Shown piece by piece: positions 49,579 to 51,302 of a stretch of DNA of 63,488 nucleotides. The notes under the pieces were generated by a model. It was given only the letters and a program-made list of their open reading frames with translations, ran no database searches and was not told where the DNA came from. Numbering within the stretch: position 1 is the first letter of the stretch; each line of letters opens with the position of its first letter. Source of the DNA: Dimorphilus gyrociliatus (Eukaryota > Animalia > Annelida); contig CAJFCJ010000062.1 of assembly GCA_904063045.1 (NCBI GenBank), positions 1 to 63,488 of the forward strand. Reading direction: 5' to 3'. The position numbers and the translations under genes were made by a program.

Positions 49579-51302
49579 TATCCAATACTCCTTGCCATGA
49601 AGAGATACTAATTAGGAAATCGAGATTCGAATTATATACTTAAAGAACAAAAAATATGGAAAATATTGCTATTTTCGTATTGTTTTCTCGCCGTAAATTA
49701 TTAATTAGCTTGTATATAAGTTCATTATTAAATTAACTTTTTACAGCGAGGTCCAAAAGGCCGTTGAAACATCTAAAAACCTCTATCAGAGGTGGTGTGA
49801 GTTAATTAACGAAAACCGGATGGTTGTCAAAGAGGAATTGGACTGGACTACAAATGAATTAAAAAATTCATTACGTAGTATCAAGTGGGATCTGGAAGAT
49901 CTAGAAGAAACAATAAATATCCTTTAATATCAATTTATCTGTATTCTATATATAGAACAAAAAAAGAGATTTTATGTATTTTCTCCTTTCTTTTACAAAT
50001 TCCTTCCATGTCTTTTATATATTTTAATTATCATTATTATTCATAAACTAGCAACTACATGTATTGATTTTCTAAAATCTACAGCTCTTTTTTTAGTTGC
50101 TATAGTAACCTATAAGCTCTATTTATGTACAGTGGCTATTTAAAGTGAACGTATGTGATAAGAGAAAATCACTGTTACTAGTCCAACGGGCTAAACATTA
50201 ATTTCCTTAACCTTTCTTCTTTTAAGCATTGTAGAAAAGAATCCAAAAAAATATAGAATCGACGAAGGAGAACTTCGAGATAGAAAGAGTTTTGTTGAAC
50301 GAACGAAGTATACTATAAAAGATATGAAAGATCACGTAAATAATCCCAGCTCCCGCTCTCGCCAAAAAGCTGATAATGATGAGAGTACTGTTAGACAAGT
50401 TAGTCTATTTAACCTATATATGTTGATTATATACCGTATAGATTTTATACAAGTGCAATTTATTATAAAATCCATATTACGAAATAACAATGTAGTAGAT
50501 GGCCGCAATGTATTTTTCTCTATGGTGAACGTTGAATCTATATAATTTATCGTTTAAAACAACTTCAGAAAATCGATTGTAATACTGACGATGAAAAGGT
50601 TTGATTTGATTTAACGGAGAAAATATAGATGGTTCAAGGGATTTCTTTCTATTTTACTCTAAAACACCCTCTTTATTACCAACATAAAAGCGAAAACATT
50701 TTCGCACTATACTCTCCACACTCTGTCGTCGTTTGGTTGATACAGGGAATTTTCTGGGGTGATAGACAGAGAGATTGTTAGTTGTGTATAAATAGCTCTC
50801 TCTTCGTCTATAGGTAGTAAAGTTCTAAAGCTAAAAAGAGACATTGGAATTTTACATTGAAATGATTCTATGCTAAAAATAAATTAAACTTTTAAAAATA
50901 TTGCATTTGCAGTCTCTACTAAACAATGGACCTAGTCGACCTCAGAACAAATATACCAAACTAGAAAATGAAATAGAAAGATCAAACAGTAAATTTATCG
51001 AAGATCATCAAGCCCAACAACAATTAATCATCAAATCTCAAGATGAAGAAATCGATAGAATTACATCTGGAGTTGGGGTTTTAAAAAACGTTAGTCGTCA
51101 AATTGGTAGCGAACTCGACGAGCAGGCAGTCATGTTAGACGAGTTTAATAGAGATATGGATAGAACTGATACCAGAATGGACAGTGTTATGAAAAAGATG
51201 ACGAAAGTTTTACATTTATCGAACGATAGACGGCAGTGGTGTGCTATTGGTGTCCTGCTGCTAGTTTTTGTTATTGTGATTATTTTATTTTTTGTTATAT
51301 GA
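49343..51302 (+). CDS. STX6: Syntaxin-6 (Qc-SNARE), 255 aa; exons 49343-49377, 49747-49916, 50226-50398, 50913-51302
   Basis: [39 protein letters not shown]|IVEKNP, SNARE motif [37 protein letters not shown]-terminal TM. The reconstructed length depends on the U12 intron 49917-50225. Confidence 0.95.
49917..50225 (+). other. U12-type (minor spliceosome) intron with AT-AA termini
   Basis: 5' end ATATCCTTT (U12 consensus); branch site TTCCTTAAC at 50203-50211; only a 3' end at ...TTTAA (50225) restores the frame (ETI-S-IVE). Confidence 0.85.

Follow-up and report, generated by a model that had tools for sequence, protein, structure and literature searches.

A probable AT-AA intron of the minor spliceosome in the syntaxin-6 gene of Dimorphilus gyrociliatus, and the truncation of the annotated protein

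The window, i.e. the whole stretch of 63,488 bases of the Dimorphilus gyrociliatus contig, is AT-rich (approx. 32% G+C) and belongs to an assembly of 77.9 Mb. On its + strand lies a syntaxin-6 (STX6) gene of four exons and 255 codons. The exons were translated and searched one by one, and were joined solely in scripts that checked frame and stop codons. The parts of the gene are as follows.

49343 to 49377, + strand: exon 1, with the ATG at 49343; 11 residues and two bases of the next codon; the N-terminus consists of residues invariant among orthologues.
49378 to 49746, + strand: intron 1, ordinary U2-type GT-AG (GTGAGT ... TTTTTACAG), holding a (TA)n microsatellite.
49747 to 49916, + strand: exon 2 (EVQK...LEETI), ending in phase 1 after ...LEETI; match to the PF09177 profile, positions 9-64, E value 6.5e-15.
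49917 to 50225, + strand: intron 2, 309 nt, 26% G+C, assigned as U12-type with AT-AA ends.
50226 to 50398, + strand: exon 3 (IVEKNPKKY...STVRQ), first base G; STX6_10_61_N profile positions 66-99; contains the start Met of the public annotation.
50399 to 50912, + strand: intron 3, U2-type GT-AG (GTTAGT ... TTTGCAG); P0172 and the public protein P0001 both read across its spliced junction.
50913 to 51302, + strand: exon 4 (SLLNNG...FFVI), with the SNARE motif (PF05739, E value 8.5e-12), the transmembrane anchor and the TGA stop at 51300-51302; 100% identical to P0001.

The succession of the STX6_10_61_N domain (PF09177) on exons 2 and 3, of the SNARE motif (PF05739) on exon 4 and of a hydrophobic tail identifies the product as a t-SNARE of the Syntaxin-6/10 type, and its C-terminal 154 residues are 62-66% identical to annelid STX6 proteins. 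Intron 2 is bridged by one residue alone, encoded by an AGC codon split as A/GC (Pfam profile positions 64 to 66; here and below a slash marks the splice boundary). No second copy of STX6, allele or paralogue, was found in the 77.9-Mb assembly, which contains the copy in the window only. The microsatellite of intron 1 spans positions 49540-49575, and similar TA-rich tracts are found on either side of the gene (approx. 49115-49165 and 51450-51490).

The earlier note, made from the DNA letters, had proposed that intron 2 (49917-50225) is removed by the minor spliceosome, that it has the rare AT-AA termini, and that the AG overlapping its end is out of frame and leads to an immediate stop. The coordinates were all found to be correct, the motifs perfect and the productive junction unique by sequence logic, and the stop was located exactly. 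The elements on which the assignment is based are listed below.

49917 to 49925, + strand: U12-type 5' splice site ATATCCTTT, perfect consensus; exon 2 ends with ...ACAATAA at 49916.
50203 to 50211, + strand: U12-type branch site TTCCTTAAC, perfect consensus, pairing with GUAAGGAAA of the U12 snRNA of this same genome.
50212 to 50223, + strand: spacer of 12 nt, CTTTCTTCTTTT, all pyrimidine and free of A, so that AA is the first possible A-N acceptor.
50224 to 50225, + strand: the 3' terminal AA of intron 2, ending 14 nt past the branch-site motif.
50225 to 50226, + strand: AG overlapping the terminal AA one base downstream, shifting the frame if used.
50232 to 50234, + strand: TAG stop reached after use of the AG; the product would be of 70 residues, ending with ...ETITL, and the exon 3/exon 4 junction, the last of the mRNA, follows 164 nt downstream of the stop.

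By comparison with the U12 consensus sequences, RTATCCTTT for the donor and TTCCTTRAY for the branch site (PMC1635337), the donor of intron 2 occupies positions 1-9 of the intron and its branch site falls within the 10-20 nt that precede the 3' end. In such an AT-rich window neither motif is remarkable by itself, with RTATCCTTT found four times versus 2.6 expected, and TTCCTTAAC twice versus 0.9 expected; it is their position at the exon edges that carries the weight, and the probability that both 9-mers fall by chance exactly at the two edges can be estimated from the window rates as roughly 1e-9. The pyrimidine run that precedes AAG resembles a U2-type acceptor and is atypical for U12 introns, which are usually devoid of a distinct polypyrimidine tract. 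Since it is short and lies 3' of the branch site it does not argue against the U12 type, although it is not what such introns usually show. The other U12 motifs of the window that were considered, at 13066, 47911 and 27437, lack a suitably placed branch site, and a U12-like pair on the minus strand (59842/59400) is antisense to a coding exon of the + strand and was attributed to chance. The latter exon, at about 59400-59560 (+), is J-domain-like, and KKHHPDKGG is read when the minus-strand sequence is complemented.

Alternative junctions were evaluated by enumerating all combinations of donors at 49900-49934 with acceptors at 50205-50244 and by retaining those in frame and free of stops. Among the 353 pairs so obtained none is GT-AG or GC-AG. 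The one AT-AC pair among them would place its 3' end on the final two bases of the branch site, with a gain of eight residues. If the U12 donor is taken as fixed, 49916/50226 is the single junction that restores ...ETI-S-IVEKNP..., in which I-V-E is invariant in 19 aligned orthologues. An AT-AG junction at 50235 was discarded, since it loses the invariant S-I-V-E and is too distant from the branch site. A second, weaker ATATC motif, ATATCAATT, is found at 49927-49935, 10 nt inside the intron. Its combination with the AG ending at 50226 is in frame and would yield ETI-NILY-IVE, but the NILY insertion was rejected on the basis of conservation and the pair is regarded as a coincidence. Retention of the intron leads to ...ETINIL and then to a stop. 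Exon 2 and intron 2 both terminate in TAA, and the spliced RNA would therefore be identical for four registers, namely AT-AA and three shifted ones. Thus, the sequence of the RNA alone is insufficient to define the termini, and the AT-AA call follows from the register fixed by the U12 donor.

Transcript-derived evidence is available from a close relative. A Logan contig of 959 nt encodes P0172, a protein of 154 residues that belongs to the same cluster as the public D. gyrociliatus protein P0001 and is 96% identical to it. The search with exon 2 recovered P0173, of 81 residues, from a contig of equal length, reading ...DLEETISIVERNPKKISHR. The 959-nt contig encodes ...DLEETISIVERNPKK, with ETISIVE across the junction, which shows that the STX6 transcript of the relative is spliced as predicted. 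A frameshift after NPKK, corresponding to the A-run at 50245-50251 of the window, splits its open reading frame into the 81- and 154-residue parts. It would correspond to a different length of the A-run in exon 3, as judged from the tail ISHR, which fits YRID in a frame displaced by one base if synonymous changes are allowed, and is probably a homopolymer assembly error. The information from the relative concerns the junction at the mRNA level and not the genomic ends of the intron, and productive use of the site in D. gyrociliatus itself is what we infer.

The annotation of the gene presents a different picture. The public protein DgyrCDS14663 (P0001, CAD5126568.1) is a fragment of 154 residues whose start Met (MKDHVNN...) falls within exon 3. 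Exons 1 and 2 and the beginning of exon 3 are absent from it, and with them the entire N-terminal domain of STX6. When the 154-residue sequence was used as the query, no full-length STX6 protein of Dimorphilus was recovered, and full-length STX6 proteins of annelids and other animals matched it with up to 66% identity. The defect is found elsewhere too: gene models are interrupted at the same intron in Ridgeia, Lamellibrachia, Mactra and Batillaria, and Ridgeia STX6 is split at that point into two gene calls of 76 and 175 residues. The expectation that standard predictors would mis-annotate the gene is thus borne out by the public fragment and by four broken models in other animals. A literal reading of the public annotation, which holds only the 154-residue product, would be that the gene is decaying or its intron no longer removed, with loss of the N-terminal domain and synthesis of the SNARE fragment alone. 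This is regarded as extremely improbable, given that exons 1-3 are intact, that exon 2 is 68-75% identical to its annelid orthologues with all invariant residues kept, that no other STX6 copy is present in the genome, and that the transcript of the relative is spliced, its protein differing by conservative substitutions (K/R, K/E).

The position of the intron was then compared with that of its counterparts, as had been suggested at the outset, by matching three annelid loci (Owenia, Capitella and Ridgeia) exon by exon to D. gyrociliatus STX6. In all three a U12-like intron interrupts the gene at the same codon and in the same phase, with the following signals.

Owenia STX6: donor G/ATATCCTTT, branch site TTTCCTTAAC, 3' end AC/GT; AT-AC.
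Capitella STX6: donor A/GTATCCCTT, branch site ACCTTAAT, 3' end AG/GT; GT-AG.
Ridgeia piscesae STX6 (locus L007, 9386-9970, JAODUO010000668.1): donor A/ATATCCTTT, branch site TTCTTGAC, 3' end CTTACAGCAA/GT; probably AT-AA.

For Ridgeia the alternative is an AT-AG intron ending three bases upstream, which would add one residue seen in no orthologue. These sequences also bear on the possibility that the base at 50225 is in truth a C, misread or misassembled, and that the intron is an ordinary AT-AC one. This intron is AT-AC in its ancestral and most frequent form, as in Owenia and, according to published work, in fly and human (PMC2831892), and the region is present in a single copy in the assembly, which leaves no second allele for a cross-check. 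However, Ridgeia, an independent assembly, has CAA/GT at the same place. A base error is unlikely on priors, and by taking into account the Ridgeia sequence it is judged very improbable.

Further traces of the same intron were found among database proteins. The search with exon 2 yielded 33 short proteins, 29 of which (including P0179, P0180, P0194 and P0071) run past ET[I/V] into N-I-L, D-I-L or S-I-L. As codons, [N/D/S]-I-L corresponds to xATATCCTT or xGTATCCTT, and thus indicates a U12 donor at exactly that position, often mis-annotated, in molluscs, annelids, fishes, a turtle and others. ET[I/V]-[N/D/S]-I-L can, therefore, be used at the protein level as a simple mark of minor introns that have been mis-annotated in STX6 and STX10. 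Fly Syx6 and human STX6 have been listed as containing a U12 AT-AC intron, with fishes having switched to GT-AG (Lin et al. 2010, PMC2831892). The positional identity with the fly and human intron is drawn from that report together with the read-through signature in other animals. On these grounds intron 2 of D. gyrociliatus STX6 would be the local copy of an ancient minor-spliceosome intron common to metazoan STX6/STX10, which forms part of the explanation that is considered likely as a whole.

That the genome retains the U11 and U12 snRNPs had been surmised in the earlier note, and a search of the assembly returned one gene each for U11 (113 bits), U12 (91.7 bits), U4atac (63.9 bits) and U6atac (87.6 bits), all above the Rfam cut-offs. 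In the alignments the pairing segments are intact, namely the 5' end of U11 (AAAAAGGG), the branch-site-binding segment of U12 (GUAAGGAAA) and the segment AAGGAGAGA of U6atac. A homologue of CCDC84/CENATAC (Pfam PF14968) is also present on the minus strand at G000:C2:1684604-1685785 (loci L060 and L061), with three exon-wise matches that cover profile positions 1-274; for human cells, CENATAC has been reported to favour AT-AN introns (PMC8280824).

A rough picture of the other U12 introns of D. gyrociliatus was obtained by searching the genome for donor and branch-site patterns at fixed gaps, which provides a sample only and in which the 3' sites are set by continuity of the open reading frame rather than by RNA. 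Three such searches gave 10, 30 and 10 matches, and the reversed patterns, used as control, gave 4, 15 and 11. Six clear AT-AC introns were sampled (L014, L026, L030, L037, L044 and L046), with AC ends 9-12 nt past the branch-site motif, many of the U12-like introns are GT-AG, and a few possible oddities were noted. Among the latter, L031 (G000:C6:4347984-4348051; GTATCCTTT...TTTCCTTAAC) has no AG in range and is perhaps GT-AT, and L022 (G000:C1:744103-744182; ATATCCTTT...ATCCTTGAC), with an AG ending 10 nt past the motif, is perhaps AT-AG, or a U2 intron that starts a few bases upstream. The sampled introns being mostly canonical AT-AC or GT-AG, the minor spliceosome of this animal looks ordinary and the AT-AA ends appear as an exception. 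The distance of 14 nt for the STX6 AA is slightly long with respect to the 9-12 nt of the six AT-AC introns, and no A precedes this AA. The optimal distance between branch site and 3' end has been reported to be 11-13 nt (PMC3584512).

Intron 2 of STX6 is thus best described, from the sequence evidence collected here, as a constitutive U12 AT-AA intron with 49916/50226 as the productive junction and with the last base changed from C to A, an explanation considered likely. U11 and then U6atac would pair with ATATCCTTT, by which cleavage would be fixed before the A at 49917, and U12 would pair with TTCCTTAAC. The 3' site would be the first usable A-N within the allowed range of distances from the branch site, i.e. 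the AA at 50224-50225, and the outcome would be ...ETI-S-IVEKNP... and a normal t-SNARE of 255 residues. The terminal A would most simply represent a C-to-A change in an ancestral AT-AC intron, presumably neutral, and tolerated because no particular last base is required of A-starting introns. The overlapping AG would be a by-product of that change beside a conserved exon base: the first G of exon 3 being fixed by a conserved Ser/Gly codon (AGY/GGY), an AG arises automatically once the last base of the intron is A.

The AG lies only one base past the AA, which itself is at 14 nt, so that some use of it is plausible and may occur as noise, giving mis-spliced RNA prone to nonsense-mediated decay (NMD). 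A stronger proposal is that AA and AG act as competing 3' sites in tandem, that the AG product is destroyed by NMD, and that their ratio sets the output of STX6. Both dinucleotides are inside the permitted 10-20 nt from the branch site, the TAG is eligible for NMD by the 50-55 nt rule at 164 nt from the last junction, the choice of U12 3' sites has been described as error-prone (PMC3584512), and Ridgeia shows the same AA/G arrangement. However, the sole transcript-derived protein, that of the 96%-identical relative, contains the productive junction and not the AG junction. Moreover, the conserved Ser/Gly codon imposes the G in all orthologues, so that the tandem arrangement needs no selection; the AA is the first A-N after the A-free spacer and is nearer to the distance optimum; AT-AG combinations are reported to be disfavoured (PMC3584512); and the AT-AC and GT-AG orthologues of Owenia and Capitella have no tandem competitor, which indicates that the gene does not need such control. 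By taking all this into account, control of STX6 output by AA/AG choice is considered quite improbable, and nothing shows a regulatory role of the intron.

Equally doubtful is an extended form of the proposal, according to which AT-AA is an old and stably kept state in part of Annelida (Dinophilidae and Siboglinidae), with AA/G giving rise to a measurable, condition-dependent, frame-shifted and NMD-targeted STX6 mRNA. If it were true, it would represent a 'wobble' switch of one base, peculiar to minor introns of the A type. With the constitutive AT-AA intron as the preferred explanation, no new splicing question is raised, and the wider interest would depend on the AG being used in a regulated manner.

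The main value of the analysis is the correction of an annotation, CAD5126568.1 being without its N-terminal domain as a consequence of a missed intron. It also implies that annotation-based counts of minor introns are too low for exactly the non-canonical ones. The U12 intron of STX6 in fly and human, the AT-AA subtype and the occurrence of minor introns in D. gyrociliatus were already known from published work. The truncation of the public protein and the termini of the annelid introns (AT-AC in Owenia, GT-AG in Capitella, probably AT-AA in Ridgeia) are new, on a small scale. Within annelids, one orthologous intron is found as AT-AC, as AT-AA (probably so in Ridgeia) and as GT-AG, a minor addition to what is known of subtype switching. 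As to the terminal bases in general, Dietrich et al. are said to have found, in 2001 and 2005, that C is preferred as the last base and that the penultimate A is essential.

Among known systems, the A-type (AT-AN) minor introns, and specifically their AT-AA subtype, are the closest to intron 2. As described (Levine & Durbin 2001 and Dietrich et al. 2005, both cited through PMC8280824; PMC10639083), these introns share with it the AT start, the penultimate A, a variable last base and perfect U12 motifs. [quoted passage not shown] With respect to this subtype no difference in kind is apparent; intron 2 of STX6 is one more instance, which surveys based on annotation have overlooked owing to the truncated gene model. 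The same study found that the set of minor introns retained by D. gyrociliatus is a reduced one, approximately 80% having been lost, mainly by deletion (Larue & Roy 2023, PMC10639083). It deals with the same species, but it made use of annotated introns, and STX6 intron 2, being unannotated, was probably not counted. With the tandem or alternative U12 3' sites that have been interpreted as splicing noise (PMC3584512), intron 2 shares the presence of two acceptors one base apart and within the range of branch distances, the second of which is in STX6 a candidate only. Finally, the U12 intron of STX6/Syx6 (Drosophila CG7736 and human STX6; PMC2831892) corresponds to intron 2 in gene family and in its U12 donor and branch-site signals, with a donor placed in the same codon after ET[I/V] across many metazoans. 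The difference lies in the termini, which are AT-AC in fly and human and GT-AG in fishes, whereas in D. gyrociliatus the last base is an A.
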